Of a DNA stretch of 64,000 nt, positions 2,657 through 37,447 are shown one piece after another; position 1 is the first letter of the stretch, and every line of letters starts with the position of its first letter. The stretch lies in IMG/VR virus record IMGVR_UViG_3300027996_002186, positions 310,001 through 374,000 of that record; one strand, given 5' to 3'. Position numbers and translations under genes: made by a program. The notes under the pieces were generated by a model. It had not been told where the DNA came from. It saw only the letters and a list, made by a program, of their open reading frames with translations, and ran no database searches.

Positions 2657-2708
2657 ACTTTTACATAATCAAATACTATATACTATCTACTCATTAAAAA
2701 AGTAGAAA

Positions 2709-2985
2709 TTAATTACAAATTAATTTGGTAGAACGAAAGTCTATCCGTATATTTGTAAGACAATTAAAGAGAACCAGTAGTTTGCGGTTTGTTCCATAAA
2801 ACTATAATACGTCATACTTTAATTGTTTTTTGAAAATAATTATAAATAAATTAGGTAGAAGAGAAAAGTCTCCTTATATTTGTAAGAACAAACAAAGACA
2901 ATGAAGTCTTCAAAAAATAAAAAAAGAAATTATAAATAAATTAGGTAGAACGAAAAACTCTACTTATATTTGTAAGACAAACAAA
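2709..2985 (+). promoter_or_regulatory. Three tandem near-identical Bacteroidota-type promoters
   Basis: Repeat unit AAATWAATT(T/A)GGTAGAA..N..TATATTTGTAAGA; -7 boxes TATATTTG at 2748-2755, 2875-2882 and 2965-2972, each 20 nt after TTTG/TTAG. Confidence 0.75.
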
Positions 2986-2992
2986 ACAAAAT

Positions 2993-3088
2993 GGTCGGTT
3001 CGTCTAGTGGCTGGTTTTCTCTTGAGAGAATCTTAGGACGGTAACCTTTTCGGGTTACAGACAGAGTGTTCGATTCCTCTACCGACTA
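2993..3088 (+). tRNA. Atypical tRNA-Glu-derived element 1 (D-loop hairpin insertion, non-canonical anticodon arm)
   Basis: Acceptor GGTCGGT/ACCGACT; D-stem GTC/GAC with TAGTGG; ~22-nt hairpin insert 3011-3033; anticodon arm GTAACC-TTTTCG-GGTTAC; T-loop TTCGATT with a bulged stem; no encoded CCA. Confidence 0.7.
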
Positions 3089-3090
3089 CA

Positions 3091-4020
3091 AGAAGTTACT
3101 CAACGGAGTAACATATGTTCTTTGAAATGTTAAATACACAGAAACTCGACTTCGGTCTTAGAGTTCTTCGGAACAGAGTGGATGTAGGGCGGCTTATAGT
3201 CCTTAAATAAACCACGAAAGTGGGATAAAGTGGATACAATGTGTAAAATGTGTCTGCGGCTCGAACCTAGTTTGAGCTCGAGTAAGCAAGTGAGATATCA
3301 CCAATCTTGAAGTACCGAGGGTAACTCCGTAGGGAAATGGATTCGTGACTGGGCAATTTGTAGGTGTTCAGTTGAGGTCGGAAGACCAATAAGAATAACT
3401 CATAGAGATTATTACAAGAAGTGTTGACTATCCGGTTAATACCATTGTGTGTCTCAATCTGAGAGGTATCTCAAAGTCGAAAGACAATTCTTCGTACAGG
3501 TGGTGCTGTTGTAGAACATTAATCTCTCTACCAAGAGAGTAGATTGTAGCAGTCTAACAAACGTACAGTTGTGATGAAGATATCTTAAATGGTTGTGGTG
3601 GAGGCATCACACGGAGAAGTCCAGTATTCTTGAGACCAAAAATTTTGAGAGCTGAGAGGTAACCACTCCTTCGAAACAATCTACAAACACTTAAATTTAA
3701 TTTTAATTCAAAACTAAAAATAAATCGAAAGTGTTACCTAGTTACTAGTGAAAGGTGACTACTTAGTCGTGAATCGTTCACGGCCACGAAAGCTCGAAAG
3801 GCGGACGTGATTTCACTGAAAAACTTATAGGGTGTCGAAACCCGAATCAGGATGCGAATCTTGAATAAGCAGAGTAAGTGGAGAGTAATTAGTAACTCAA
3901 GAAGTGGTTAGTCTAACTAACCGTCACTGACAAGATACCGTTCACAAAAGAAACGGTGGATAAGTTGGGAATTAATAATCCAACTAAAGACTTGTCACTT
4001 AAAGATGTAATCTCAGTCTT
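3091..4020 (+). ncRNA. Large ornate structured RNA, GOLLD-like
   Basis: No ORF; GC content far above flanks; many UUCG/GNRA-capped hairpins (3148-3157, 3163-3174, 3212-3223, 3476-3485, 3848-3863); long-range pairs TGACAAG 3928-3934/CTTGTCA 3991-3997 and CTGAGA 3652-3657/TCTCAG 4011-4016; tRNA-adjacent phage context and size fit GOLLD; family assignment from recall only. Confidence 0.7.
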
Positions 4021-4028
4021 TTTTATAT

Positions 4029-4123
4029 GGTCAGTTCGTCTAGTGGTGGGGTCTCTTTTAAGATACTCCGAGGACAGTAACCTTTTCGGGTTATAAACAT
4101 TGGTTCGAATCCAATACTGACTA
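4029..4123 (+). tRNA. Atypical tRNA-Glu-derived element 2 (same architecture as element 1)
   Basis: Acceptor GGTCAGT/ACTGACT; D-loop hairpin insert GGGGTCTCTTTTAAGATACTCC (4048-4069); anticodon arm GTAACC-TTTTCG-GGTTAT; canonical T-arm ATTGG-TTCGAAT-CCAAT. Confidence 0.72.
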
Positions 4124-4201
4124 CAAAGTTTTCGTAGTGGTTAACTTCTCTTTAATTAGAGGGTCTGTTTTGAACAGTTTTGATTACCTAACATCATCTA
4201 T

Positions 4202-4239
4202 AAACCCATCAATAGATTTATTTCATTGATGGGTTTTTT
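4202..4239 (+). terminator. Intrinsic terminator closing the RNA locus
   Basis: AAACCCATCAAT / ATTGATGGGTTT followed by a T-run. Confidence 0.75.
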
Positions 4240-4286
4240 ATTTATATACAATTTGTAAACTTTTCCTTTTAAAATAAAATAATAGT

Positions 4287-4898
4287 ATGGGAAAAGAGAT
4301 GTTGAAAAATAAAGAGCTTAGGATGATGGGGTTAGTGCCTTACAACCTATCAGATATACAAAAAGGTATTCAATTTGGACACGCTGTTGTTGAGTATAGT
4401 CAAATGATTAAAAAATCCAATAAAATTACTCATATAAATAGATATGAAGATTGGGCAGATAACTGGAAAACATTTATAATATTGAATGGTGGTACATCAA
4501 ATCATTCGGTTAATAGGTATCAACCAAATGAGGAATTTATCGGGTCTATGGAAACAAATCTAGAGACTCTAAAAAAGGCCGGAATACCAGTTGGTGTTTT
4601 TTATGAACCAGATCTAAATGATATGTTATCGGGTATTGTTTTCGTAGTTCAAGAAGAAGTTTTTAATAAAAAGGATTATCCTGATTTTGAAGATTGGGTT
4701 ATTGAAAATTATGGTGGTTTATTAAAAGTAGATACTGATAATCAATCATATGCTGAATCATCTAAACAACTATCGATGATGATTAAATATTCAGAGGATG
4801 AACATGATCAAAAAATCTATAATAAATGGGTTGATTTCGTTGGTGGTAGTAGTAACGCATTTATGAAAGAATTTTTAATAAATTTTAGTTTAGCATAA
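4287..4898 (+). CDS. Peptidyl-tRNA hydrolase 2 (Pth2)-like protein
   Basis: QFGHAVVE, FIILNGG and FYEPDLNDMLSGIVF motifs as in phage Pth2-like proteins. Confidence 0.6.
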   Translation: MGKEMLKNKELRMMGLVPYNLSDIQKGIQFGHAVVEYSQMIKKSNKITHINRYEDWADNWKTFIILNGGTSNHSVNRYQPNEEFIGSMETNLETLKKAGIPVGVFYEPDLNDMLSGIVFVVQEEVFNKKDYPDFEDWVIENYGGLLKVDTDNQSYAESSKQLSMMIKYSEDEHDQKIYNKWVDFVGGSSNAFMKEFLINFSLA

Positions 4899-5338: not shown

Positions 5339-7453
5339 ATGGAAGAAAATAAAGAGAAAGAATATTTGGATAAAGTTGAAGAAGTGAAAGCTTCAATTGA
5401 TGATGGTGGTGATGAGGATAGATACATTTCTTCTAAGAAACCAGACCCGAAATCTAAAACTCCGGTATTAGATACTTATAGTCGTGATCTAACTAAGATG
5501 GCAGAAGATGGTAAGCTTGATCCAATTGTTGGAAGAGAAAAGGAAATCGAAAGAGTTTCTCAAATTCTTTCAAGAAGAAAGAAAAATAATCCGATTCTAA
5601 TCGGTGAACCAGGGGTTGGTAAATCTACTATCGCAGAGGGATTAGCACTTAGAATAGTTCAAAGAAAAGTTAGTAGAATTCTTTTTAATAAAAGAATTGT
5701 AATGCTTGATTTAGCTTCTATGGTAGCTGGTACTAAGTATAGAGGACAGTTTGAAGAAAGAATCAAAGCTCTTATGTCAGAACTTGAAAAAGATCCTGAT
5801 ATTGTTCTTTTCATTGATGAAATTCATACTATTATCGGTGCTGGTGGTGCATCAGGTTCACTTGACGCATCCAATATGTTCAAACCAGCATTAGCTCGTG
5901 GTGAAATACAAATCATTGGAGCAACTACACTTGATGAGTACAGAAAGCATATCGAAAAAGATGGGGCACTTGAAAGAAGATTTCAAAAGGTAGTTGTTGA
6001 GCCAGCAACACCAGAAGAGTCAATTCAAATTTTAAGTAACATACTTGATAGATATGAAGACCATCATAATGTTACTTATACACCAGATGCTATTAAGGCT
6101 TGTGTTGAATTAACAACAAGATATATGAATGATAGATTCTTACCAGATAAGGCTATTGATGCTCTTGATGAATCTGGGGCTAGAGTACATATCGCTAATA
6201 TAATTGTTCCAAAGGAAATAACTTCCATTGAGAAAAAGATTGTCGATATTAAAGAAATGAAGAACGATGTTATACGTTCTCAGAAATATGAAGAAGCGGC
6301 TAAACTAAGAGATGTTGAAAGACAACTTAATGAATCTTTGGATATAGCAAGACAAGCTTGGGAGGATGATTCAAAAAACAATAGACAAACTGTAACTGAT
6401 GAAAATGTTGCTGAAGTTATTTCGATGATGACTGGTGTACCTGTTAGTAAGGTAAACGAGAAAGAGAATACAAAACTTGGAAAGATGAAAGATGTAGTAT
6501 CATCTAAAGTTATTGGACAAGATGAGGCTGTTAAAAAGATTGTGAAAGCTATTCAGAGAGGTCGTGTTGGACTTAAAGACCCGAATAAACCAATTGGTTC
6601 ATTTATGTTCTTGGGACCTACTGGTGTTGGTAAAACACAATTAGCCAAAGAATTGACCAAGTATCTTTTCGACTCAGAAGAGTCTTTAATTAGAATTGAT
6701 ATGTCAGAGTATATGGAGAAATTCGCAGTGTCTAGATTGATTGGAGCACCTCCGGGATATGTTGGTCACGATGAGGGTGGACAATTAACTGAAAAAGTTA
6801 GAAGAAAACCTTATTCTGTAATCTTACTTGATGAGATTGAAAAAGCTCACCCAGAAGTATTTAACTTACTACTTCAAGTATTAGATGATGGTCAATTAAC
6901 TGATTCACTTGGAAGAAAGGTGAACTTCAAGAATACGATTATTATTATGACATCAAATACTGGTTCTCGTCAATTAAAAGATTTTGGTAATGGTGTTGGA
7001 TTTTCAACAAAAGCAAAACAATCGTCTAAAGGTGAACACTCCAATGCGGTTATTGATAAAGAGTTGAAGAAAAAATTCGCACCCGAATTCTTAAATCGTG
7101 TTGATGATATCATTATGTTTAACTCTTTAGATAGAGAAGATATTAATGAGATAATCAAGATTGAAGTTGCTAAAGTTGTTGAAAGAGTTGAGCAAATGGA
7201 ATTCACACTTGACTTTACAGACGAGTCTATCAATTATATAGCTGGTGAAGGATTTGATCCTCAATATGGGGCTAGACCTTTGAAAAGAGCAATTCAAAGA
7301 CACGTTGAAGATGTTCTAACAGAAGAAATCATTGAATCTAATCCACCTAAAGGATCTAAGTTAACACTTGATTATGATAGTGAAAATGAGAAAATGATTG
7401 TTCTTACTAAGAAGAAAAGAGCTACTCGTAAGAAAAAAGAGGGTGATGAATAA
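5339..7453 (+). CDS. clpC: ClpC-type Hsp100 AAA+ ATPase lacking the N-terminal Clp_N domain
   Basis: Two Walker A motifs (GEPGVGKS, GPTGVGKT), FIDEIH, UVR motif KYEEAAKLRD, GVGF ClpP-docking loop, GARPLKR. Confidence 0.9.
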   Translation: MEENKEKEYLDKVEEVKASIDDGGDEDRYISSKKPDPKSKTPVLDTYSRDLTKMAEDGKLDPIVGREKEIERVSQILSRRKKNNPILIGEPGVGKSTIAEGLALRIVQRKVSRILFNKRIVMLDLASMVAGTKYRGQFEERIKALMSELEKDPDIVLFIDEIHTIIGAGGASGSLDASNMFKPALARGEIQIIGATTLDEYRKHIEKDGALERRFQKVVVEPATPEESIQILSNILDRYEDHHNVTYTPDAIKACVELTTRYMNDRFLPDKAIDALDESGARVHIANIIVPKEITSIEKKIVDIKEMKNDVIRSQKYEEAAKLRDVERQLNESLDIARQAWEDDSKNNRQTVTDENVAEVISMMTGVPVSKVNEKENTKLGKMKDVVSSKVIGQDEAVKKIVKAIQRGRVGLKDPNKPIGSFMFLGPTGVGKTQLAKELTKYLFDSEESLIRIDMSEYMEKFAVSRLIGAPPGYVGHDEGGQLTEKVRRKPYSVILLDEIEKAHPEVFNLLLQVLDDGQLTDSLGRKVNFKNTIIIMTSNTGSRQLKDFGNGVGFSTKAKQSSKGEHSNAVIDKELKKKFAPEFLNRVDDIIMFNSLDREDINEIIKIEVAKVVERVEQMEFTLDFTDESINYIAGEGFDPQYGARPLKRAIQRHVEDVLTEEIIESNPPKGSKLTLDYDSENEKMIVLTKKKRATRKKKEGDE

Positions 7454-7532: not shown

Positions 7533-8114
7533 ATGACACTTTATGTTTTTATAACACACCAGAAAAATATTAATAATTGTTATGAAACAATATCCGAAAT
7601 GATGGATTCAGATTTCATAATTGTTCAAGGTGGATTCATTAAGAATGAATATGATGAAGAAAAAAGAATTCTAAATCTAAATTGTAATGATGGATATGCT
7701 GGACTTCCAGAAAAGGTAATGAAAACATTCCACTTTTTAATTAGTGATGATAGGTTCAATAAGTACACACACTTTTGTAAATTAGATGATGATATGAAAG
7801 TTACTAAACGGTTTGAAAATATCGAAGGTGATTATTTAGGAAATGTTCATTATGTTGATGGTAGTAGAAATTGGCACATGGGTAGATGTGGTAATTTTTG
7901 GGATAAAGTACCATATATGGGTGAGTTTACTCCTTGGTGTATGGGTGGGTTTGGTTATGTAGTTTCTAGAAATGCTTTAGAAAAAGCTTTACCTAATTTT
8001 AATTATCTAGATCACATCTACGAAGATCTTTATATTGGTATCCTACTCAAAAGTGTTGGGATAGAACCAAAGATGATAAATACAAAAGAGCATTTGGTTA
8101 GTCCAGATCATTAA
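7533..8114 (+). CDS. GT31/Galactosyl_T-like glycosyltransferase
   Basis: KLDDD (DxD), WCMGGFGYVVSR, YEDLYIGIL. Confidence 0.7.
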   Translation: MTLYVFITHQKNINNCYETISEMMDSDFIIVQGGFIKNEYDEEKRILNLNCNDGYAGLPEKVMKTFHFLISDDRFNKYTHFCKLDDDMKVTKRFENIEGDYLGNVHYVDGSRNWHMGRCGNFWDKVPYMGEFTPWCMGGFGYVVSRNALEKALPNFNYLDHIYEDLYIGILLKSVGIEPKMINTKEHLVSPDH

Positions 8115-8184
8115 TAAATTATGGAGAATAATAAAAACTATTATTTAAAATGAAAGTAGCGACAATAAAATAAAATTTAAGATA

Positions 8185-8862
8185 ATGAAAATAGGATTAT
8201 TAATAATAGCAACAAATAAATACTCGCAATTTTTACAACCACTAATTGAAAGTGCTGATAGGTTTTTTCTTAAAGACCAGGATGTAACATACTTTGTTTT
8301 TACTAATGAAGATATACAGATTAATACTAATAGGAAAGTAGTTAGAATTAATGTTGAGCATAAAGAGTGGCCCTGGATGACACTAGGTCGATATGAAATA
8401 TTCTCAAATAATTCAAACGAATTATCAAAAATGGATTATCTATATTATTGTGATGCAGATATGAGATTTGTTGATTTCGTTGGTGATGAAATTTTAAGCG
8501 AAAGAGTAGCTACACAACATTGTGGTTATTATGAAGTTAGAGGAACACCCGAAACGAATACAAATTCACTCGCATATGTTGCTCCGAATGAGGAAATGCA
8601 ATATTTAGCAGGTGGATTTAATGGTGGTACATCAGAAGAATATCTAAAAATGTCAAAAGTATTATCTGATAGAACTAATAATGATTTTGAAAAAGGTATT
8701 ATTGCTGTTTGGCACGATGAAAGTCATATGAATAGATATTTCATAGATAATAAACCAACACTTATACTAGACCCTAGTTATTGTTATCATGAGGGTAGTA
8801 ATAGACCATTTAAGCAAAGATTAGTAGCTTTATCAAAAAATCATTCAGAACTAAGAAAATAA
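8185..8862 (+). CDS. GT6 glycosyltransferase (ABO-transferase family)
   Basis: IATNKY, DADM, AGGFNGG, WHDESHMNRY. Confidence 0.9.
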   Translation: MKIGLLIIATNKYSQFLQPLIESADRFFLKDQDVTYFVFTNEDIQINTNRKVVRINVEHKEWPWMTLGRYEIFSNNSNELSKMDYLYYCDADMRFVDFVGDEILSERVATQHCGYYEVRGTPETNTNSLAYVAPNEEMQYLAGGFNGGTSEEYLKMSKVLSDRTNNDFEKGIIAVWHDESHMNRYFIDNKPTLILDPSYCYHEGSNRPFKQRLVALSKNHSELRK

Positions 8863-13379: not shown

Positions 13380-14330
13380 ATGAAAAATAAAAAAATATTA
13401 ATAATAGGTGGGACCGGAGCACTTGGTAAAACTTTAATAAAAAGGTATCAAGGTATAAATGATATACTTATACTGAGTCGTGATGAACACAAACATGTCT
13501 ATTTAAGTAAAGAAGAATGGGTGAGTGAAGATGTTAAATTTAGAATAGGTGATGTTAAAGATATAGATTCTTTGAGAAATACGATAGAAGACTATAAACC
13601 AGATGTTATTATTAATACAGCTGCTTTAAAGCACGTTCCTATTTGTGAGGCTAACCCATATGAATCAGTTAATGTTAATGTTATAGGACACCAAAATTTA
13701 ATACAAGCTATTAAATGGTCTTCACATACAATAGAAACATTGATATTTGTTAGTACTGATAAAGCTTGTAAACCTATTAATGTTTATGGTATGTGTAAAG
13801 CTATATCAGAGAGGCTTTATATTGAGTATGCAAATCAACAAAGTGATATAAAGGTTTGTTTGGTTAGATATGGTAATGTATTAGAATCTACTGGATCTGT
13901 CATACCATTCTTTAAGAAATTATTAGAAGAGGGTAAGACTAGTCTCCCGATTACTGATATGAGGATGACTAGATTTTTATTAACTCTAGAGAGAGCAACC
14001 GAATTGATTGATTGGGCTTATAACAATGACACACATGGTAAAATTGCCATACCTAAAGTGGAATCATTTTCTATTAAATCAATAGCAAATGCTTTAATTA
14101 AATGGAAAGGTATTGATGGTGAGTTAGATATTGTTGGTATTAGACCAGGTGAAAAGTTACATGAGGAAATGATATCGGACATTGAGTGGATGAGAACAGT
14201 TGATGCTGGTGAAAATTTCTTAATAACTGATAATTTTGTAACAAATGATACCAAATCATATAATTCACTTGATTCATTAATGGATGATGATAAGGTTTAT
14301 GAATTTTTAGAAAATAGTGAGGTAATATAA
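13380..14330 (+). CDS. UDP-GlcNAc 4,6-dehydratase (PseB/FnlA/CapD-like)
   Basis: GGTGALG, AALKHVP, STDKA, RYGNV, MTRF, GIRPGEKLHE. Confidence 0.9.
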   Translation: MKNKKILIIGGTGALGKTLIKRYQGINDILILSRDEHKHVYLSKEEWVSEDVKFRIGDVKDIDSLRNTIEDYKPDVIINTAALKHVPICEANPYESVNVNVIGHQNLIQAIKWSSHTIETLIFVSTDKACKPINVYGMCKAISERLYIEYANQQSDIKVCLVRYGNVLESTGSVIPFFKKLLEEGKTSLPITDMRMTRFLLTLERATELIDWAYNNDTHGKIAIPKVESFSIKSIANALIKWKGIDGELDIVGIRPGEKLHEEMISDIEWMRTVDAGENFLITDNFVTNDTKSYNSLDSLMDDDKVYEFLENSEVI

Positions 14331-14345
14331 AAATAATAAAATTAA

Positions 14346-15590
14346 ATGCAAGTTTATAAAAAAAGAGAATGTTGTGCTAGTTGTACTAGTAAAAATCTAA
14401 GAAACATTTTAGATTTAGGTATTGTTCCGTTAGCTGGTAATTTCCCAAAAAAAGAAGAACTTTCTGAGGTAGAAACCTATCCATTAGCTTTACAATTTTG
14501 TGAAGATTGTAAGTTGGTACAAACGGACTCTGTTATAGATCCAGATGTTTTATTCAGAGATTATAGATATCTATCATCAATTGGCCTAACTGATTATTTT
14601 AAAGGTGTTGCTGTTGAGTTGGATAATAAATATAATTTAAGTGGTAAGGATATTTTAGAATTTGGTTGTAATGATGGGGTTTTACTCAAACCATTGGTAG
14701 AATTAGGGGCTAATGCCATAGGTATAGATCCTTCTATAAATGTATCAAAAATAGCTAGAGATAAAGGATTGAATGTTATTACTGATTATTTTAATATAGA
14801 TAACTTTGGTGGTGATGAGTGGGAAGATAAATTCGATATAATTATATCCAATAATACTTTTGCTCATATTATTGATATAAATAGTGTTGTGAAATCTGTA
14901 AAGCATTGCTTAAAGGATGGTGGTAAATTTATATTCGAAGTTCATTACTTAAAAAGTTTAATAGATGAGTTACAATGGGATAATATCTATCATGAGCATA
15001 TTTATTATTACTCAGTAACATCTCTTAAAAACATGTTAGGTAAATTTGGGTTGTCTATAATAGATGTTGAAAATAGAGATATACATAGTGGATCTATAAG
15101 AGTTACCGCTGAGAAATCTGGGAAAGTATCAGAAAAAGTATCAGAGATAATAGAAAGTGAGAGAGACACAATATGTGATGTAAATTATTTAGATATTTTC
15201 CAAAAATTAGTAAACAAACACATAGAAGATTTTAAGGATGAGATTAAAAAGTCTAAAGATAAAGGTCTTAAAATATGTGGGTATGGTGCCTCTGGTAGAG
15301 CTAATATGTTCTGTAACATAACAAATATTGACGATACTATAATAGATTTTATTGTTGATGAATCACCAGAAAGATGTGGTAGGTATATTGCTAATAAAAA
15401 TATACCTATTGTTGATGTGGAAACATTGAAGAATAGTGAGGTGGATTTATTGATAATATTTGCTTGGAATTATTCTAAAATGATAATGGAGAAGACAAAG
15501 TATAAAAAATATAATTATATGGTAGCTTTTCCAAAAATACAATACATAAACGAGTATGATACTGAGAAGATAAAATTTAAATCAATATAA
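14346..15590 (+). CDS. NDP-hexose C-methyltransferase
   Basis: N-terminal Zn site CxxC..CxxC, EFGCNDG, YHEHIYY, HSGSIR, YGASGR, DESP. Confidence 0.85.
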   Translation: MQVYKKRECCASCTSKNLRNILDLGIVPLAGNFPKKEELSEVETYPLALQFCEDCKLVQTDSVIDPDVLFRDYRYLSSIGLTDYFKGVAVELDNKYNLSGKDILEFGCNDGVLLKPLVELGANAIGIDPSINVSKIARDKGLNVITDYFNIDNFGGDEWEDKFDIIISNNTFAHIIDINSVVKSVKHCLKDGGKFIFEVHYLKSLIDELQWDNIYHEHIYYYSVTSLKNMLGKFGLSIIDVENRDIHSGSIRVTAEKSGKVSEKVSEIIESERDTICDVNYLDIFQKLVNKHIEDFKDEIKKSKDKGLKICGYGASGRANMFCNITNIDDTIIDFIVDESPERCGRYIANKNIPIVDVETLKNSEVDLLIIFAWNYSKMIMEKTKYKKYNYMVAFPKIQYINEYDTEKIKFKSI

Positions 15591-16432
15591 TGGAAGATTT
15601 TGGATTTATAATACCATCATATTGTGAAGATGATATACATCTTACTCAGTTATTGAGATGTCTGAATTCTATACGTAGATTTCACCCAAATAACACAATA
15701 TTAGTAATCGATGATTATTCTAAAGTAAATTTAGATGATAAATTATCATCATTTGATAATATCAAAGTTATAAAATCCTTTGTTAAAGGAGCAGGTGATA
15801 TGGTAACATTTGATGTTTTTAGAAAAACTAAACTATTTAAGAAAGCTGTTATATTCCAAGATAGTATGACTTTGGAATCTGAGTTGGTTAATATAGAAGA
15901 TATAGAAGATATTTCGTATATATGGTACTTCACAAATCATAGATTATATTGGCACATAATACCCGAGCCAAAAAATGAATATAACATAAAGAATAATATA
16001 AATGTACATGATGATGCTGTAATGGATAGCATTAAAAACTTTATAACAAATGAAAATTTTAAAAAATATGCTTTGGATATGTATCCAAAGAAGGATGAGT
16101 GGTCTGGTTGTTTTGGATGTCTTGGTATAATAGATATAGATTTTTTAGAAATATTAAATAACGAAACAGGTATAATAGATTTTCTATCTAATATGGATGA
16201 TAATAGGAAAAGGAGAGTAGCTGAAAGTATATTTGCACTAGCTTGTAAATATGTATTAGGAGATTCTGTTTTCGAAAAAGCTTATGATGGGTTATATTGG
16301 GATGGAAAAAACGAACAAAGAAATAAAAAAATGATGAATTCAAGAGAATTGGGATTTGATTTCAACATGAGATTAGATCAAGTTTGTAAGAATGATTATT
16401 TTTCAAAAATTAGCTTTAATAGAAATTTATAA
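15590..16432 (+). CDS. GT-A-like hypothetical glycosyltransferase
   Basis: FIIPSY, VIDDYS, IFQDSM; island context. Confidence 0.5.
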   Translation: MEDFGFIIPSYCEDDIHLTQLLRCLNSIRRFHPNNTILVIDDYSKVNLDDKLSSFDNIKVIKSFVKGAGDMVTFDVFRKTKLFKKAVIFQDSMTLESELVNIEDIEDISYIWYFTNHRLYWHIIPEPKNEYNIKNNINVHDDAVMDSIKNFITNENFKKYALDMYPKKDEWSGCFGCLGIIDIDFLEILNNETGIIDFLSNMDDNRKRRVAESIFALACKYVLGDSVFEKAYDGLYWDGKNEQRNKKMMNSRELGFDFNMRLDQVCKNDYFSKISFNRNL

Positions 16433-16433
16433 T

Positions 16434-18950
16434 ATGGAGAGAAAATATAGTATAATAGGTCACACTGGTTTTGTTGGTAGTTATCTATCTAATGTGTTAG
16501 ATCCAACATTTAAGTATAATTCCAAAAACATAAAAGATATTATAGTTGATGAACATGATATAATCATATGTTGTGCTCCGAGTGCTACTAAATGGTTAGT
16601 TAATAAAAACCCAGAAGAAGATAAAAATAATATCGATAATATGATTGGTATTATTTCTGAGCTGAGGGGTAAATGTAAGAAATTTATATTAATATCAACA
16701 ATAGATGTTTATGATGATTTGGATGGGTCTGATGAAGATTCTTCTATAAGTGATGATAACCACCATTATGGAACCAATAGACATTATTTCGAAAATAAGT
16801 GTTCTGATATTTTTGGTGATGATTTAAATATAATTAGATTATGTGGTTTATATGGATATGGGTTAAAGAAAAACATAATATTTGATTTCATAAACGACAA
16901 ACTGGAAAGCATAAACATAAATTCTAAATTTCAATGGTATAATATCGAGTATCTAGGAAAGGATATACAATATTCAATTGAACAAAATATTAAAGTTTTG
17001 AACTTATTTTCAGAACCAATTAAAAACACAGAATTATTAGAACTGTTTAGTGAATTTAAGGATACCACTAATATAATTAAGGATAGTGGTGTTGGGGTTA
17101 GTTACGACTGTAAAACAAAATTTTCAAATACTGGATATTGGCTTAATAATGAAACGATACTAAATGATATTAGATCGTATTTAGATAAAATGGTAAATCC
17201 ATCCAAGATAATAGTTAGTAATATATGTTGGTCAGAAGATATTGATTATAAAATATATGATAAATATGGTATAGATTCAATTGAAGTTTCACCTAGTAAA
17301 CATTTTGGTGTTAATTATATCAACGAAGATATTGAATTTTTTGATAAATTTAAAGATGATAATATCTATTCATTTCAATCTATTTTTTTTGGAAAAAACT
17401 TTACCATAATTGATAATTATGACGAAGTATTATCACACTTAAAGAAAATAATAGACATATCCGAATACTTATCTATTAAATCAATTGTATTCGGATCACC
17501 AAAGGTAAGGATTGTAAATAATGAAAATGATTATAATACAATTTTCAAATTCTTCAAGGAAATATCTGAATATTTAAATAATAAGTGTGTTATTCTATGT
17601 CTAGAGCCAAATTCCAAAGGATACGGTTGTAATTTTTTAACCAATACGGACGAAACATCAATATTTATAAAGAAGGTAGATAGTTATAATATAAAAATGG
17701 TAATAGATACCGGTTGTATGCAAATGGAGAATGAGTATATATTATCTTCCATTGAAAAACACAAAGAAATAATAGAACACGTTCATTTTAGTGCTCCTAG
17801 ACTAACTAACCTTTTCGAATATAAGGATATTATCAATTATAAACTTATAATGAAAAAATTAGAAGAAATATCTTATGATAAAAAGATAACCATTGAGATG
17901 TTAAATAAATCAAAATTAGAAATTGATAAAAATCTTTATTTATTGTTTAGTAATATCAATATATTAATTATTGGAGCCGGTTGGTATGGTTGTCATATTT
18001 CTAAAAAATTAATAAAAAGTGGTATAATACCAACAATTGTTGATAAAAAGGGAATATTTAGTGGGTCCTCATCATTGAATCAAAATAGGTTACATTTGGG
18101 CTTTCATTATCCTAGATCTTATAACACTAGGATGTTATGTAGGGACAATTTCGATTCATTTGTTGATGAGTATGGTGAATTTTTAGATGATGTCGATAAC
18201 AATCTTTATTTAATATCAAACAAATCACTATTAGATTTTAAAACATATTTACAAATAATGGAATCATCAGGTTTGAAATTTTCAACAATAGATGTTAATG
18301 ATAATTTAAAGAATATTGAGGGTGGTATACGATGTGATGAAAAATTAATAAAACATGATAGTGTTAAATCATATTTCAAAGAGACATTATCCAGGTATGT
18401 TAGTATTAAAACTATATCTAATCCCAAAGAATTGAAAAATGAATATGATTTAATATTGGATATGACTAATAATAATTATGGGTTGATAAATAATGAAAAG
18501 AAAGTATTCTATGAGAATACTATTTCATTTGTCTATAAAAAAATAAAGGATAGTGATGAAGTAACATCATATACTATAATGGATGGTAAATTTTTAAGCA
18601 TATATCCTTATGATATTAAAAATAATCTATACACATTAACTGATGTTGAATTCACACCATTTATGGTAAGTGATTCCATAGAAGATTTGGATAAGTTTAT
18701 ACCAACTAATGAGTGGTTGGAGAAAACAAAAGCTAATTTTAATAATAAGGTTATAGAGTATCTACCAGATTTTGAAGAAAAATTTAGATATGAATATTTC
18801 TTCATATCTAAAAAAAGTAAGTTTGATTTTGGTTCTGACTCAAGAGAATTGATAAGTGATTCAAATTCAAATATAATTTCATATAGTTGTGGTAAGATAA
18901 CTGGAATTTTTGAATGTGAGAGATATTTAGAAAAAATAAAAATAATATAA
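16434..18950 (+). CDS. Tri-domain fusion: NAD-dependent epimerase + xylose-isomerase-like TIM barrel + FAD-dependent oxidoreductase
   Basis: GHTGFVG Rossmann start (likely start 16434); middle VFGSPK, LEPN, IDTG, HVHFS; C-terminal IIGAGWYG, NQNRLHLGFHYPRS. Confidence 0.7.
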   Translation: MERKYSIIGHTGFVGSYLSNVLDPTFKYNSKNIKDIIVDEHDIIICCAPSATKWLVNKNPEEDKNNIDNMIGIISELRGKCKKFILISTIDVYDDLDGSDEDSSISDDNHHYGTNRHYFENKCSDIFGDDLNIIRLCGLYGYGLKKNIIFDFINDKLESININSKFQWYNIEYLGKDIQYSIEQNIKVLNLFSEPIKNTELLELFSEFKDTTNIIKDSGVGVSYDCKTKFSNTGYWLNNETILNDIRSYLDKMVNPSKIIVSNICWSEDIDYKIYDKYGIDSIEVSPSKHFGVNYINEDIEFFDKFKDDNIYSFQSIFFGKNFTIIDNYDEVLSHLKKIIDISEYLSIKSIVFGSPKVRIVNNENDYNTIFKFFKEISEYLNNKCVILCLEPNSKGYGCNFLTNTDETSIFIKKVDSYNIKMVIDTGCMQMENEYILSSIEKHKEIIEHVHFSAPRLTNLFEYKDIINYKLIMKKLEEISYDKKITIEMLNKSKLEIDKNLYLLFSNINILIIGAGWYGCHISKKLIKSGIIPTIVDKKGIFSGSSSLNQNRLHLGFHYPRSYNTRMLCRDNFDSFVDEYGEFLDDVDNNLYLISNKSLLDFKTYLQIMESSGLKFSTIDVNDNLKNIEGGIRCDEKLIKHDSVKSYFKETLSRYVSIKTISNPKELKNEYDLILDMTNNNYGLINNEKKVFYENTISFVYKKIKDSDEVTSYTIMDGKFLSIYPYDIKNNLYTLTDVEFTPFMVSDSIEDLDKFIPTNEWLEKTKANFNNKVIEYLPDFEEKFRYEYFFISKKSKFDFGSDSRELISDSNSNIISYSCGKITGIFECERYLEKIKII

Positions 18951-19705
18951 TGGAGAAAAGAGAAATATGCTTTGCTACTTTTGCTAGAAATGAAAAAGTT
19001 AGATTACCTATATGGTTAAAACACTATTCTCAATTTTCTAGTAAAGAAGATATATATGTATTTGATCAGAATACTGATGATGGTAGTACTTCTAATATAG
19101 AATGTAATGTTATACCAGAACCAAATGAAAAAGTCTTCGATCATAGTTGGATACAAGATATGATAAATAGAAGACATAAATGGTTGTTAGAAAGGTATAA
19201 AATAGTTGTTTTTATGGAATGTGATGAATTAATAATAACAAAAAACTCTGAAAATTTAAGAGATTATCTAATTAATAAACTTAAAACCCCTAATAAATTA
19301 GCAATTGAGATATTTGATATTGTGCAAAATGAGAAAGAAGGTGAGGTTTTATATGATGATACTATTAAAATTTCAAACCAAAGAAAATATTGGAGACCTT
19401 GGACAGGAGCTCACAAATCAACAATATCATCTATTGAGAAGAATATAAATATAGGATTTCATGGGAAGGATGGGTGTGAAATTGATAATAATTTAGTTTC
19501 TATACACATACAACTATTAAATATAGACTTTTTTAGACAAAAAATAAATGATAGATTGGAAGAGAGTGATAAACATGGTAAAGGTGATGATCATGCTTGT
19601 TGGGACATACACTATAAAAGAGATATGATTGATAATCATATTAATGAAGCATATTCTTTGATGGAAGAAGTGCCGGATTGGTTTAAAAATAACAAATGGA
19701 TATAA
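18950..19705 (+). CDS. GT2-like (Glyco_tranf_2_4-type) protein
   Basis: LPIWLKHY, DQNTDDGST, FMECDE, IGFH. Confidence 0.55.
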   Translation: MEKREICFATFARNEKVRLPIWLKHYSQFSSKEDIYVFDQNTDDGSTSNIECNVIPEPNEKVFDHSWIQDMINRRHKWLLERYKIVVFMECDELIITKNSENLRDYLINKLKTPNKLAIEIFDIVQNEKEGEVLYDDTIKISNQRKYWRPWTGAHKSTISSIEKNINIGFHGKDGCEIDNNLVSIHIQLLNIDFFRQKINDRLEESDKHGKGDDHACWDIHYKRDMIDNHINEAYSLMEEVPDWFKNNKWI

Positions 19706-20523
19706 TGAGTATATTAATAATAGGATCGACTGGGATGTTAGGTAATACCCTTAAAAAATATTTAACAAAAATAAATATAGATTTTAAAACCTTAGATAGG
19801 AAAGATTTGGATTTATCCAAATGTGGATTCGATATTGTAAAGGAAAAAATAATACAATCAGGCTGTAATGTTGTTGTAAATTGCGCAGGTATTGTTAAGC
19901 AAAGGAAGAATACATCAACTGCTGATTTTATACATGTGAACTCATTAATACCACACTGGATTTCCGATATATGTGAGAAGCAGGATATGAAAATGATACA
20001 CATAACAACTGATTGTGTATTTGATGGTAAAATAGGTGATTACAAAGAAAGTGATGTACATAGTGTTTATGATGATTATGGTAGAAGTAAATCAATGGGT
20101 GAACCAAAAAACTGTACTGTAATAAGAACATCAATAATTGGTGAGGAGGAAGAAAATAAACTATCATTATTAGAGTGGGTTAAGTCAAATAAAGGTAATG
20201 AAATAGATGGGTATAAAAACCATCTATGGAATGGATTAACTTGTCTTCAATTATCTAAATTGATGAAATATATAATCGATAACGATTTATATTGGAATGG
20301 TGTCAAACATATATTCTCAAACCAAGTTAATAAATATGATTTGGTTAAAATGATTAATGAAATATACGAATTGGATATTAAAATACACCCAACTAATGGA
20401 TCAACATTGGTAAACAGAACACTTGATACAGTATATGATATTGATATATTTAATATACCTAATCTAGGTAAGCAAATAAAAGAAACAAAAGACTTCCATA
20501 ATAATATAAAAATGAGGAATTAA
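19705..20523 (+). CDS. rmlD: dTDP-4-dehydrorhamnose reductase
   Basis: GSTGMLG, NCAG, HITTDCVFDG, YGRSKSMGE, IRTSIIG. Confidence 0.85.
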   Translation: MSILIIGSTGMLGNTLKKYLTKINIDFKTLDRKDLDLSKCGFDIVKEKIIQSGCNVVVNCAGIVKQRKNTSTADFIHVNSLIPHWISDICEKQDMKMIHITTDCVFDGKIGDYKESDVHSVYDDYGRSKSMGEPKNCTVIRTSIIGEEEENKLSLLEWVKSNKGNEIDGYKNHLWNGLTCLQLSKLMKYIIDNDLYWNGVKHIFSNQVNKYDLVKMINEIYELDIKIHPTNGSTLVNRTLDTVYDIDIFNIPNLGKQIKETKDFHNNIKMRN

Positions 20524-20544
20524 AAAATATTACGATAACTTATT

Positions 20545-21657
20545 ATGAAAATAGCAATAGTAACAGGGTCAGCAGGACTCATAGGATCACAAACGTGTGA
20601 TTTTTTACACGAAAAGGGATATAAAATTGTTGGGGTTGATAATGATATGAGGTCATACTTTTTTGGAGAAGAAGCTTCAACTAATGATTCTCAAATATCT
20701 TTACAAGATAAATTAGAAAATTACGAACATCAATATGTAGATATTAGAAACTATGAAGAGATGGATAAAATATTTAAGAGACATGCTGATGATATTGAGA
20801 TGGTAATACACACAGCGGCTCAACCATCACATGATTGGGCTGTTAAAGAACCACTTACTGATTTTAGTGTGAATGCGACCGGTACGATGAATATGTTAGA
20901 GTTAACAAGACTGAATTGTCCAAAAGCAACATTTATATTTACATCAACCAATAAAGTATATGGGGATAGACCAAATCTATCTTATGATAATTCATCATCA
21001 GATTTAGAATATAATGGCATGATGATAAAGGAAGAGGAAACTAGATGGGAAGCTTATTTTGAAAGTAAAGAAACGGCTTTATCAGCTATTGATGAAAAAA
21101 TGTCAATTGACAATACAAAACACTCTGTATTTGGAGCTTCTAAAGTAGCAGCCGATGTTATGTGTCAAGAATATGGTAAATATTTCAATATGAATATAGG
21201 TATCTTTAGGGGTGGGTGTTTAACTGGTCCTAACCACGCTGGTGCTGAATTACACGGGTTCCTTTCTTATCTAGTAAAATGTGCTGTTCATAATAAACCA
21301 TATACAATATTTGGATATAAGGGTAAGCAAGTTAGGGATAATATACACTCTTGGGATTTGGTTAATATGTTTTGGCATTTTCACAAAGACCCAAAACAAG
21401 GAGAGGTTTATAATGTAGGTGGTGGTAGAAATAATTCAACTTCCATATTAGAAGCAATAGATAAAATAAATAAAATATCTGGGTATAATTGGGATAATTA
21501 TACTCTAAGTGATGAAAATAGAGTTGGTGATCATATGTGGTATATATCAGACTTATCTAAATTTAAGAATGATTACCCAGGATGGGATATAACAATAGAT
21601 TTGGACGAAACTTTGAAACAAATGGTTGAGTTTGAAAAAAATAAAATAGATAAATGA
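20545..21657 (+). CDS. NAD-dependent sugar epimerase (CDP-paratose 2-epimerase-like)
   Basis: TGSAGLIG, HTAAQPSHD, STNKVYGD, FGASK, GKQVRD, R.GD. Confidence 0.8.
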   Translation: MKIAIVTGSAGLIGSQTCDFLHEKGYKIVGVDNDMRSYFFGEEASTNDSQISLQDKLENYEHQYVDIRNYEEMDKIFKRHADDIEMVIHTAAQPSHDWAVKEPLTDFSVNATGTMNMLELTRLNCPKATFIFTSTNKVYGDRPNLSYDNSSSDLEYNGMMIKEEETRWEAYFESKETALSAIDEKMSIDNTKHSVFGASKVAADVMCQEYGKYFNMNIGIFRGGCLTGPNHAGAELHGFLSYLVKCAVHNKPYTIFGYKGKQVRDNIHSWDLVNMFWHFHKDPKQGEVYNVGGGRNNSTSILEAIDKINKISGYNWDNYTLSDENRVGDHMWYISDLSKFKNDYPGWDITIDLDETLKQMVEFEKNKIDK

Positions 21658-22493
21658 TAGTAGTTAAGCTTATGGGTGGAATGGGTAATCAGATGTTCCA
21701 ATACGCACTAGGACGGAGTTTATCAATTAAATATAACACACAATTAAAGATAGATTTATCCTTTCTTAAAAATAAGAATATGGGTACTAACTTCACTTAT
21801 AGAGATTATGATTTGAATATTTTCAATATGAGTGAGGATTTTGAAATTGGTTCGGTTAATCTACTAGGTGTTAATGAGCCAAATTTTTCATATTCACAAC
21901 CACTAATAGATATGATTAAGTCTAAAATGGATGAGGATGTAAATAACTCTTTTTTGTTAAATGGTTATTGGCAAACCCCAAAATATTTTCAAGATATAGA
22001 AGATCAAATAAGAACCGATTTTACATTTAGAGATAAGGTTGAAGAAGCAGATGAAAGCATTAAGGAAATGTTAAATCAGATAAAATCAACAAACTCGGTT
22101 TTATTGAATGTGCGTAGGACTGATTATCTAAACACAGATTACCATGGGGTTATGGGTGATGAATATTTAAAAAAAGGTGTTGAGTTAATTGAATCGAAAA
22201 TAGAAAACCCTCATTATTTTTTATTCTCAGATGATGTTGAGTGGTGTAAAGATAATATAAAATTTGATAATATGACTATTGTTGATCATTCTTATAAGGG
22301 TGATAGATTTAGTTATTATTTACAACTGATGAAGAATTGTAAACATTTTATCATACCAAATAGCTCATTTGCTTGGTGGGCAGCTTGGTTAAATGAGGAT
22401 AGTGATAAAATAGTAATAGCACCTGAGAAATGGTTTACTGATAGTAATATAAATACAAGCGATTTGATACCAGATAACTGGATAAGAATATAA
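21654..22493 (+). CDS. GT11 alpha-1,2-fucosyltransferase family
   Basis: GGMGNQMFQYA, GYWQ, NVRRTDY, FSDD, IPNSSFAWWAAWL. Confidence 0.9.
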   Translation: MIVVKLMGGMGNQMFQYALGRSLSIKYNTQLKIDLSFLKNKNMGTNFTYRDYDLNIFNMSEDFEIGSVNLLGVNEPNFSYSQPLIDMIKSKMDEDVNNSFLLNGYWQTPKYFQDIEDQIRTDFTFRDKVEEADESIKEMLNQIKSTNSVLLNVRRTDYLNTDYHGVMGDEYLKKGVELIESKIENPHYFLFSDDVEWCKDNIKFDNMTIVDHSYKGDRFSYYLQLMKNCKHFIIPNSSFAWWAAWLNEDSDKIVIAPEKWFTDSNINTSDLIPDNWIRI

Positions 22494-22502
22494 TAAAAAA
22501 GA

Positions 22503-23348
22503 ATGGATTTAGGAGTAATAGGACAAGGATTTGTCGGAGGGGCTGTTAATGAGGGTATGAAAAACTTCTTTAATATGGTCACATTTGATTTAAATGGTAA
22601 TTGTACAGAACCATCATTATTCTCTTTGATAGAGAAGGTTGATGAGACATTTTTGTGTTTACCAACACCGATGAGAAAAACAGGTGAATGTGATTTATCG
22701 ATTGTTAGAAATTGTTTAAATGATGTATCAAGTATTGTAAAGTCATTGGGTAAAAAAGATTTCATTGTGGTAATAAAATCAACGATACCACCAGGAACAA
22801 CTGAGATGTTAAATAATGAATATGATAATATCAACATTGTTTTTAACCCAGAGTTTCTAACAGAAGCTAATGCTATTGAAGATTATAAAACCCAAAATAG
22901 AATTATAATTGGTGGTGATAGACCATATTCATCAAGAATAAAACAGGTTTTTGAAAAAGCTTTCCCGAAAGTTCCGATAATTAAAACATCATCAACAATT
23001 GCGGAAATGATTAAGTATGTTACTAATACATTTTTATCAACTAAAGTATCTTTTGCTAATGAGATGTATCAGATATGTGAAGGATTAGATATTGATTTTG
23101 ATAAAGTTATAGAATATACTAAATATGATGATAGATTGGGTAATACACATTGGTCTGTACCAGGACCAGATGGTGATTTTGGATATGGTGGACATTGTTT
23201 CCCAAAAGATATATCAGCACTTAAATATGTTTCTGATGAGATGGGTGTAAACACAACTATGTTATCAGCAACCATAGAAAAGAACAAAGAAGTTCGTAGT
23301 GATAAAGATTGGGAAAAACAAAAAGGAAGAGCAGTATCAGATGAGTAA
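22503..23348 (+). CDS. ugd: UDP-glucose/GDP-mannose dehydrogenase family (short form)
   Basis: GQGFVG, CLPTP, IKSTIPPG, FNPEFL, KVSFANE, GYGGHCFPKD. Confidence 0.8.
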   Translation: MDLGVIGQGFVGGAVNEGMKNFFNMVTFDLNGNCTEPSLFSLIEKVDETFLCLPTPMRKTGECDLSIVRNCLNDVSSIVKSLGKKDFIVVIKSTIPPGTTEMLNNEYDNINIVFNPEFLTEANAIEDYKTQNRIIIGGDRPYSSRIKQVFEKAFPKVPIIKTSSTIAEMIKYVTNTFLSTKVSFANEMYQICEGLDIDFDKVIEYTKYDDRLGNTHWSVPGPDGDFGYGGHCFPKDISALKYVSDEMGVNTTMLSATIEKNKEVRSDKDWEKQKGRAVSDE

Positions 23349-37353: not shown

Positions 37354-37447
37354 AATAAAATTATTTTATGTTTTATATATTAAATTTTAGCAACAAAAAA
37401 ACCCACCTCATAAGAAGTGGGTTAATTAACCTTGTCGAGTAATTTAA

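Follow-up and report, generated by a model that had tools for sequence, protein, structure and literature searches.

Three tandem promoters of the host type probably drive a single non-coding transcription unit for a GOLLD RNA in a huge phage, as parts of an array that is probably ancestral. The promoters belong to a group, here called class 1, that consists of TTTG-GT, a 20-nt spacer, and TATATTTG-T. The tandem promoters put forward in the first-pass annotation are borne out by the sequence and by comparison with relatives: the sites have the anatomy of Bacteroidota primary-sigma promoters, belong to a family of about 34 sites in the genome, are conserved copy for copy, and precede a non-coding, terminated unit. 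On this evidence, we regard the promoter array as real and conserved, and the RNA encoded downstream of it as a member of a known family. GOLLD RNAs are among the largest non-coding RNAs of bacteria and phages and are known to build a 14-mer cage. The locus described here represents a complete, compact, and conserved GOLLD transcription unit with predicted starts, processing borders, and a terminator. The type of its promoters can be tested in Flavobacterium or Bacteroides, which makes the timing and dosage of the unit and the link between GOLLD and tRNA-like elements addressable.

The window, which is the whole 64-kb stretch of DNA that was analysed, corresponds to the minus strand of a 312.7-kb IMG/VR virus record. 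The locus is identical in a 483.3-kb record, which is near-identical to the 312.7-kb record, and in a 492.8-kb metagenome contig. The phage is therefore larger than the 312.7-kb record, which is probably a fragment of a genome of about 0.49 Mb. The 312.7-kb record is rated 91% complete, contains four canonical tRNAs according to ARAGORN, and yielded no matches to Pfam capsid or terminase families. The nearest genomes identified using blastn are LR745206.1 (634,780 bp) and LR756502.1 (642,428 bp). The size class of huge phages to which they are assigned was predicted to infect Bacteroidetes (PMC7162821), and we infer that the two genomes are the huge phages of that study. A Shine-Dalgarno-like 4-mer precedes only 13 of the 335 open reading frames (ORFs) of the 312.7-kb record, and a scarcity of Shine-Dalgarno words is a trait of Bacteroidetes (PMC6847099). 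The rarity of these words and the nearest genomes lead to the prediction that the host belongs to the phylum Bacteroidota. An alternative genetic code is unnecessary, as translation table 11 gives 88% coding.

Scans of the large ORFs of the window against PHROGs provided only a rough functional split, and the small ORFs upstream of the promoter repeats have no Pfam or PHROGs match. The genes located downstream of the unit on the same strand, in the stretches 5339–7453, 7533–8862, and 13380–23348 of the window, encode a ClpA/B-type double AAA ATPase, two glycosyltransferases, one of which belongs to family 6, sugar-nucleotide epimerases and dehydrogenases, and a tRNA-methyltransferase-like protein.

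Promoter repeats and the GOLLD unit

The repeats form one direct-repeat family with three copies on the plus strand of the window, at positions 2706–2776, 2833–2903, and 2923–2993. Across 71 nt, copy 1 is 66% identical and copy 3 82% identical to copy 2. Three imperfect direct repeats of about 45 nt had been described previously; their number is correct, whereas the likeness extends over approximately 71 nt, because it includes an A/T-rich stretch upstream of the -33 element and a conserved stretch just 3' of the -7 box. The G+C content of the repeat region is 25%. The core pattern of the repeats is 37 nt long, with 23 bases specified. It has exactly three matches in the 64-kb window, all of them on the plus strand (2724–2760, 2851–2887, and 2941–2977), and none in 100 dinucleotide shuffles.

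The first promoter, P1 (2706–2776, plus strand), has the -33 element TTTG at positions 2724–2727, separated by a spacer of 20 nt from the -7 box TATATTTG at 2748–2755, and its predicted start is at approximately position 2760. P2 (2833–2903, plus strand) is composed of TTAG at 2851–2854, a 20-nt spacer, and TATATTTG at 2875–2882, with the start predicted at about 2887. The corresponding elements of P3 (2923–2992, plus strand) are TTAG at 2941–2944, a 20-nt spacer, and TATATTTG at 2965–2972, and its start is predicted at around 2977. The exact matches to the core pattern confirm the earlier description of each repeat as a -33 TTTG or TTAG, a 20-nt spacer, and the box. P2 and P3, with TTAG in place of TTTG at -33, score below P1. 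The predicted starts were extrapolated from start-site maps of Flavobacterium, in which the box occupies positions -12 to -5 (PMC9723704, PMC6847099). P3 is predicted to start 16 nt ahead of a tRNA-like element. Between the end of the last box (2972) and the beginning of this element (2993) there is a gap of 20 nt, in agreement with the approximate distance given in the first-pass annotation.

The spacers (2727–2747, 2854–2874, and 2944–2964) tend to be internally self-complementary, with a GGTAGA-type 5' part facing the 3' part. These dyads could be an operator or a hairpin. The leader downstream of P1 (2758–2828) folds into a long AT-rich hairpin that is followed by a T run, and the whole leader region (2756–2995) has a fold z-score of -3.8. 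L028, a close variant of the window, has the 2758–2828 hairpin region as well, and the aligned relatives that are more distant lack it. The hairpin could be an attenuator or the scar of a lost tRNA, and together with the T run it could stop P1 transcripts short of the unit, lowering the contribution of P1.

The region 2657–4286 does not contain any ORF of at least 50 aa; the flanking ORF stops at 2656 and the next one starts at 4287. The variable 5' domain of GOLLD occupies positions 3093–3611 of the plus strand, where the start is approximate, and its length is about 520 nt, none of which belongs to an ORF of at least 50 aa. The domain is 75–79% conserved with LR745206.1 and LR756502.1. It is followed by the conserved 3' domain at 3612–4019 (plus strand), which matches the Rfam model RF02032 along its entire length (model positions 1–416 of 416) with 278.4 bits, compared to a gathering score of 150, and an E-value of 2e-78. 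The assignment to the GOLLD family is based on the whole 3' domain scoring above the gathering score, the long 5' domain, which takes the RNA past the length of about 800 nt expected for the family, and the phage context beside tRNA or tRNA-like elements. Each genome contains one copy of GOLLD.

Downstream of the second tRNA-like element, a spacer of about 75 nt (4125–4201, plus strand) is near-identical to a stretch after the second tRNA-like element in LR745206.1, and does not match any Rfam family. In LR745206.1, the counterpart of 4125–4201 stands between two tRNA-like elements. The unit is closed by an intrinsic terminator (4202–4243, plus strand), in which a stem-loop of about 14 pairs (4202–4236) runs into a T tract; the stem-loop is present in both the minimum-free-energy and centroid folds. 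Equivalent hairpin and T-run terminators close the unit in LR745206.1 and LR756502.1. The earlier description of a purely non-coding operon thus holds, with no ORF of at least 50 aa and a terminator that bounds the unit. It is not an unknown operon, however, because the downstream RNA belongs to the known GOLLD family. At the sequence level, the locus has the arrangement of rrn operons, in which at least two co-oriented promoters are located directly before a unit that contains only stable RNA.

GOLLD is bordered by two tRNA-Glu-like elements. The 5' element (2993–3089, plus strand) folds as a cloverleaf in which a 24-nt hairpin is inserted into the D loop, the T stem is bulged, and the anticodon arm is longer by 1 nt. 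The 3' element (4029–4124, plus strand) has the same 24-nt D-loop hairpin and the additional nucleotide in the anticodon arm, and its T arm is regular. ARAGORN calls neither of them. The Rfam tRNA model RF00005 matches the 3' element with 43.5 bits, compared to a gathering score of 29, with the 24-nt D-loop insert and one extra base in the anticodon loop, and does not report the 5' element at E-values of up to 1. A covariance model, R1, constructed from nine copies, gives 107.7 bits for the 5' element and 104.2 bits for the 3' element. In the nine copies, which come from five loci, 97.7% of the cells of the cloverleaf with the inserted hairpin are paired, including 13 compensatory pairs, compared to 33–56% in slid controls. 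In each of four genomes, the only matches to R1 with more than 70 bits are those next to GOLLD. The next-best match in the genome of the window is the canonical tRNA-Glu(UUC) of the phage, which has the D arm, the G-U first pair, and the 3' tail in common with the elements.

The anticodon arm is 18 nt long, instead of 17 nt, in all nine copies, and can form either six pairs with a 6-nt loop or five pairs with an 8-nt loop, whereas the canonical tRNA-Glu of the phage has a normal 17-nt anticodon arm. The loop letters of tRNA-Glu are kept in the 18-nt arms. Because the 18-nt anticodon arm occurs in every copy, the elements are named tRNA-Glu-like and not tRNAs. The hairpin inserted into the D-loop is 24 nt long here, and has a length of 0, 16, or 45 nt in relatives. 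Further tRNA genes of the array in relatives (L001 1548–1639; L025, L033, L023, and L034) were assigned anticodons of two or four bases by ARAGORN, which corresponds to loops of 6 or 8 nt; one of these tRNAs has a long variable arm and is positioned between P1 and P2. Non-standard anticodon loops seem to be recurrent in the GOLLD-linked array.

Promoter classes of the phage

The consensus of promoters recognized by the primary sigma factor of Bacteroidota, sigma-ABfr, is TTTG at -33 and TANNTTTG (TAnnTTTG) at -7 (PMC6847099, PMC9723704, PMC4747536, PMC10620806). Within the -7 element, T-12, A-11, T-8, T-7, T-6, and G-5 are nearly invariant, and G does not occur at -10 or -9 (PMC6847099, PMC9723704). 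All three boxes of the array agree with the -7 consensus, including the exclusion of G from the two n positions. P1 has the -33 word TTTG 20 nt from the box, and P2 and P3 have TTAG at the same place. The canonical spacing between the -33 and -7 elements is approximately 19–21 nt. The array thus resembles sigma-ABfr promoters in that the near-invariant -7 positions are all present and TTTG is located 20 nt upstream in P1, and differs from them in the TTAG of P2 and P3, the additional GGTAGA and GTAAGAC, and the partly conserved spacer. The extra conserved positions suggest a phage-specific strong subclass.

Outside the array, 36 other intergenic TATATTTG sites, counted with P1–P3 left out, have TTTGgt at a fixed distance and Tcc right before the box. 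A position weight matrix (PWM) trained without P1–P3 was used to rank positions on both strands genome-wide, and placed P1 3rd, P3 16th, and P2 19th. Scores of at least 19 bits were reached by 34 sites, compared to none in Markov-shuffled genomes, a count that involves some circularity for the training sites, though none for P1–P3. The high-scoring class-1 sites, of which there are approximately 34, are intergenic and oriented with the downstream genes. The GOLLD locus, in which P1–P3 are located within 230 nt, is the sole place in 312.7 kb with three sites within 300 nt. The same extended motif precedes the gene of a 205-aa protein elsewhere in the genome, and the protein has no Pfam or PHROGs match. 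Because it also occurs before this protein gene, the extended promoter is not special to RNA genes, and we assign P1–P3 to a strong subclass of the general promoter of the phage and not to an RNA-specific signal. Two other class-1 doublets are located outside the window, at 90297/90381 and 224152/224253 in window-oriented coordinates. The box at 90381 is followed by an ATG after 4 nt, which would result in a leaderless or near-leaderless mRNA.

The enrichment of sites is clear only with the fixed-spacing PWM of the genome itself, and is weak for looser motifs. A strict two-box pattern with a variable gap was found 10 times in the window, compared to five expected. A scan for E. coli-type sigma-70 promoters was uninformative, with 17 sites compared to 13.5 expected, and a loop-size rule caused the terminator to be missed.

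The phage contains two genes of ECF-type sigma factors, of 202 and 199 aa, which are located outside the window, at approximately 218.6–219.2 kb and 20.0–20.6 kb of the 312.7-kb record (L013 1165–1773 and L015 1213–1812, each on the minus strand of the locus). The first of them, encoding the 202-aa protein, is kept in four of four related huge-phage genomes. Because the phage encodes these two factors, recognition of P1–P3 by the host primary sigma is no more than the likelier reading of the promoter sequences. Promoters of ECF sigma factors usually look different, and typically do not have such a -7 box.

A second promoter-like motif, TTAATATATAA, occurs five times in the window, compared to one expected, at positions 37373, 38436, 42400, and 53711 on the minus strand and 53765 on the plus strand, and is found preferentially a short distance upstream of ORF starts. 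Its 9-nt core is present 97 times genome-wide, and 65 of these 97 occurrences are within 60 nt upstream of an ORF start. In the window, the motif precedes genes for a ribonucleotide reductase subunit, and is also found on the strand with the genes of a single-strand-binding protein, a polymerase-related protein, and an endolysin-like protein. The host-type class is located almost wholly on the other strand, before auxiliary genes, such as those of the Clp-type ATPase, sugar-nucleotide enzymes, and glycosyltransferases. TTAATATATAA may be the target of a phage factor. The resulting two-class promoter map of an uncultured phage of 0.3–0.5 Mb was obtained from sequence alone. The layout fits a programme in which the host-type promoters act first, but is not proof of it. 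The first-pass annotation had expected very high, early output of the downstream RNAs. Early output is suggested by the host-type consensus of the array and by the presence of the second class before replication and lysis genes, and very high output may be expected by analogy.

Relatives and history of the array

A 22-nt word from the 5' domain of GOLLD retrieved 13 metagenomic loci. Scans of viral contigs returned the same phage only, and the relatives came from the metagenome scan. Where enough upstream sequence is available, at least ten metagenomic relatives, and likewise both huge-phage genomes, carry one to four copies of the promoter module before GOLLD. No module was found in the scanned region of L027 or L032, although both loci have ample upstream sequence. 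The 29 unique copies, from approximately ten loci, are composed of an A-rich upstream stretch, TTTG-GTAGA at -33, a spacer with a constant length of 20 nt and partly conserved sequence, and TAT(A/C)TTTG-TAAGAC. The -33 word is TTTG in 26 of the 29 copies of the relatives.

In an alignment of six loci, P1 aligns with P1, P2 with P2, and P3 with P3. Because the modules align copy for copy, the triplet is considered ancestral. A tRNA of 84–88 nt is located between P1 and P2 in LR745206.1, L025, and L033. In eight related loci, a tRNA-Met directly precedes GOLLD and separates it from the tRNA-like element. Neither this tRNA-Met nor the tRNA between P1 and P2 is present in the window or in L028, and the distance between P1 and P2 in the window is shorter by roughly the length of one tRNA. 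At least five diverged loci have P2 and P3 as direct neighbours, without an intervening gene, and in each of these loci the two copies have stayed similar; in L025 they are identical from the -33 element to the box.

We read the array as a promoter–tRNA module, represented by P1, combined with a conserved promoter doublet formed by P2 and P3. Since a tRNA gene follows P1 in the relatives, part of the promoter multiplicity may be ascribed to a module array that lost its tRNAs. The retention of all three promoters after the tRNA loss suggests that selection has favoured transcriptional input into the GOLLD unit. P1 itself may be a leftover of a lost gene and not a dosage device.

Proposed function, rival readings, and known systems

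In the mechanism that we propose, the polymerase with the host primary sigma factor would start at all three sites and produce transcripts of approximately 1.27–1.48 kb that contain the first tRNA-Glu-like element, GOLLD, the second tRNA-Glu-like element, the spacer, and the terminator. The transcripts from the three starts would differ only in their 5' leaders, with lengths of about 233, 106, or 16 nt. At the first tRNA-like element, the leaders would be cut off by RNase P, and tRNA-end processing at both tRNA-like elements, 3–9 nt from the borders of GOLLD, would set this RNA free with defined termini. The presence of several strong sites with A-rich upstream stretches may make initiation more frequent, as it does in the operons of rRNAs and tRNAs. 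P1 would have once served its own tRNA gene; the intervening tRNAs were presumably lost and the three promoters kept. We infer the firing of the sites, the identity of the sigma factor, the additive high output, the early timing, and the tRNA-like processing from the features of the locus.

The history of the array can also be read differently: each repeat may have once been the private promoter of a tRNA, with P1 and perhaps P2 now decaying and only P3 serving GOLLD, so that the triplication would be uninformative about dosage. The relatives with a tRNA between P1 and P2 and a tRNA-Met before GOLLD, both of which are missing from the window and L028, the P1–P2 distance reduced by about one tRNA length, and the hairpin with the T run after P1 are consistent with such a vestigial array. 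However, P1 is the best of the three promoters and the 3rd genome-wide, and is thus not decayed. P2 and P3 adjoin gene-free in at least five diverged loci, and their likeness within loci, 82% over 71 nt in the window and identity from the -33 element to the box in L025, indicates ongoing selection or gene conversion. We consider the vestigial reading rather unlikely. Reading of the repeats by a phage-encoded sigma factor or a phage-modified polymerase, in which case the timing would be set by the programme of the phage and need not be early, is unlikely. The two ECF-type sigma genes of the phage, with their conservation in related genomes, the strong strand bias of the class, and the positions beyond the host consensus that are conserved in the 29 copies (GGTAGA after the -33 element and GTAAGAC after the box) speak for it, but the six near-invariant -7 positions of the host and the -33 word are present at the canonical distance, ECF promoters are generally known to be without such a box, and TTAATATATAA, located before replication and lysis genes, is a more natural target of a phage factor.

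It is very unlikely that the repeats are mainly operators or iterons for a DNA-binding protein, to which the promoter likeness would be secondary. The spacer is partly conserved, and the mean longest helix in the 29 copies is 5.1 within copies compared to 4.2 between copies, with none of 2000 permutations reaching the observed value, but this evidence is weak because the copies are related to each other. The two-box motif is found at approximately 34 intergenic sites oriented with the downstream genes, the cumulative GC skew has no turning point at 2.7 kb, and an operator located within a promoter would complement the promoter reading instead of replacing it. The reading of the repeats as an origin with iterons was rejected because the motif occurs throughout the genome and there is no turn of the GC skew at this position. 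The probability that the repeats reflect chance similarity in AT-rich intergenic DNA is negligible. The region has a G+C content of only 25%, and the loose scans are near chance (10 versus 5 and 17 versus 13.5 expected), but the three exact core matches compared to none in 100 shuffles, the copy-by-copy conservation of the modules in diverged relatives, in which blastn does not otherwise detect the flanking intergenic DNA, and the alignment of the modules refute it.

Tandem promoters before operons of stable RNAs, such as P1 and P2 of E. coli rrn and those of tRNA operons, are textbook knowledge, and a tandem array before a stable-RNA unit is by itself textbook biology. As at E. coli rrn P1/P2, several co-oriented promoters are located within a few hundred nucleotides upstream of a unit that contains only structured RNAs, an A/T-rich stretch precedes the -33 or -35 element, and the differing leaders are predicted to be processed off. 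Unlike rrn, the array has three sites instead of two, its promoters are of the Bacteroidota -33/-7 type, it is located in a phage genome, its product is GOLLD, and part of the promoter multiplicity is derived from promoter–tRNA modules.

GOLLD RNAs are known from the tRNA arrays of phages and prophages, and some of them contain a tRNA (10.1101/2024.12.08.627333; PMC6582537; PMC12990946). Other members of the family self-assemble into a multimeric cage, a 14-mer (10.1101/2024.12.08.627333; PMC12990946). The locus is similar to known GOLLD loci in its 3' domain, which scores 278 bits, its variable 5' domain, and its position in a phage beside tRNA or tRNA-like genes. The tRNA-Met directly upstream of GOLLD in the relatives has the same position as reported for the GOLLD env-38 RNA, the source of the solved 14-mer cage. 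Unlike known GOLLD loci, this one belongs to a huge phage predicted to infect Bacteroidota, and its flanks are derivatives of tRNA-Glu and not ordinary tRNAs. The word "promoter" occurs zero times in PMC12990946, and is used for T7 templates only in the GOLLD cryo-EM paper. The cited GOLLD papers do not appear to describe how the promoters of a GOLLD unit are arranged, the presence of such a unit in this huge-phage lineage, or the modified tRNA-Glu-like borders.

tRNA-punctuated processing is known from the mitochondrial punctuation model and from MALAT1–mascRNA. Similar to tRNA-punctuated transcripts, GOLLD is a long structured RNA with tRNA-shaped borders 3–9 nt from its ends. Purely by analogy, RNase P and a nuclease that processes the 3' ends of tRNAs would define the ends of GOLLD. 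In contrast to the mitochondrial and MALAT1 punctuation, the tRNA-like elements of the locus may have functions of their own. It is conceivable, if improbable, that the promoter array, the two tRNA-Glu-like elements, and GOLLD represent a single functional device, in which the elements, besides marking cleavage sites, would associate with the GOLLD cage as its partners or its cargo, delivered with GOLLD in a fixed proportion and in large amounts within the first minutes of infection. As parts of such a device, the tRNA-Glu derivatives might remain covalently tethered, might serve as decoys, as substrates of tRNA-targeting host defences or of the glutamyl-tRNA machinery of the phage, or might be non-triplet decoders.
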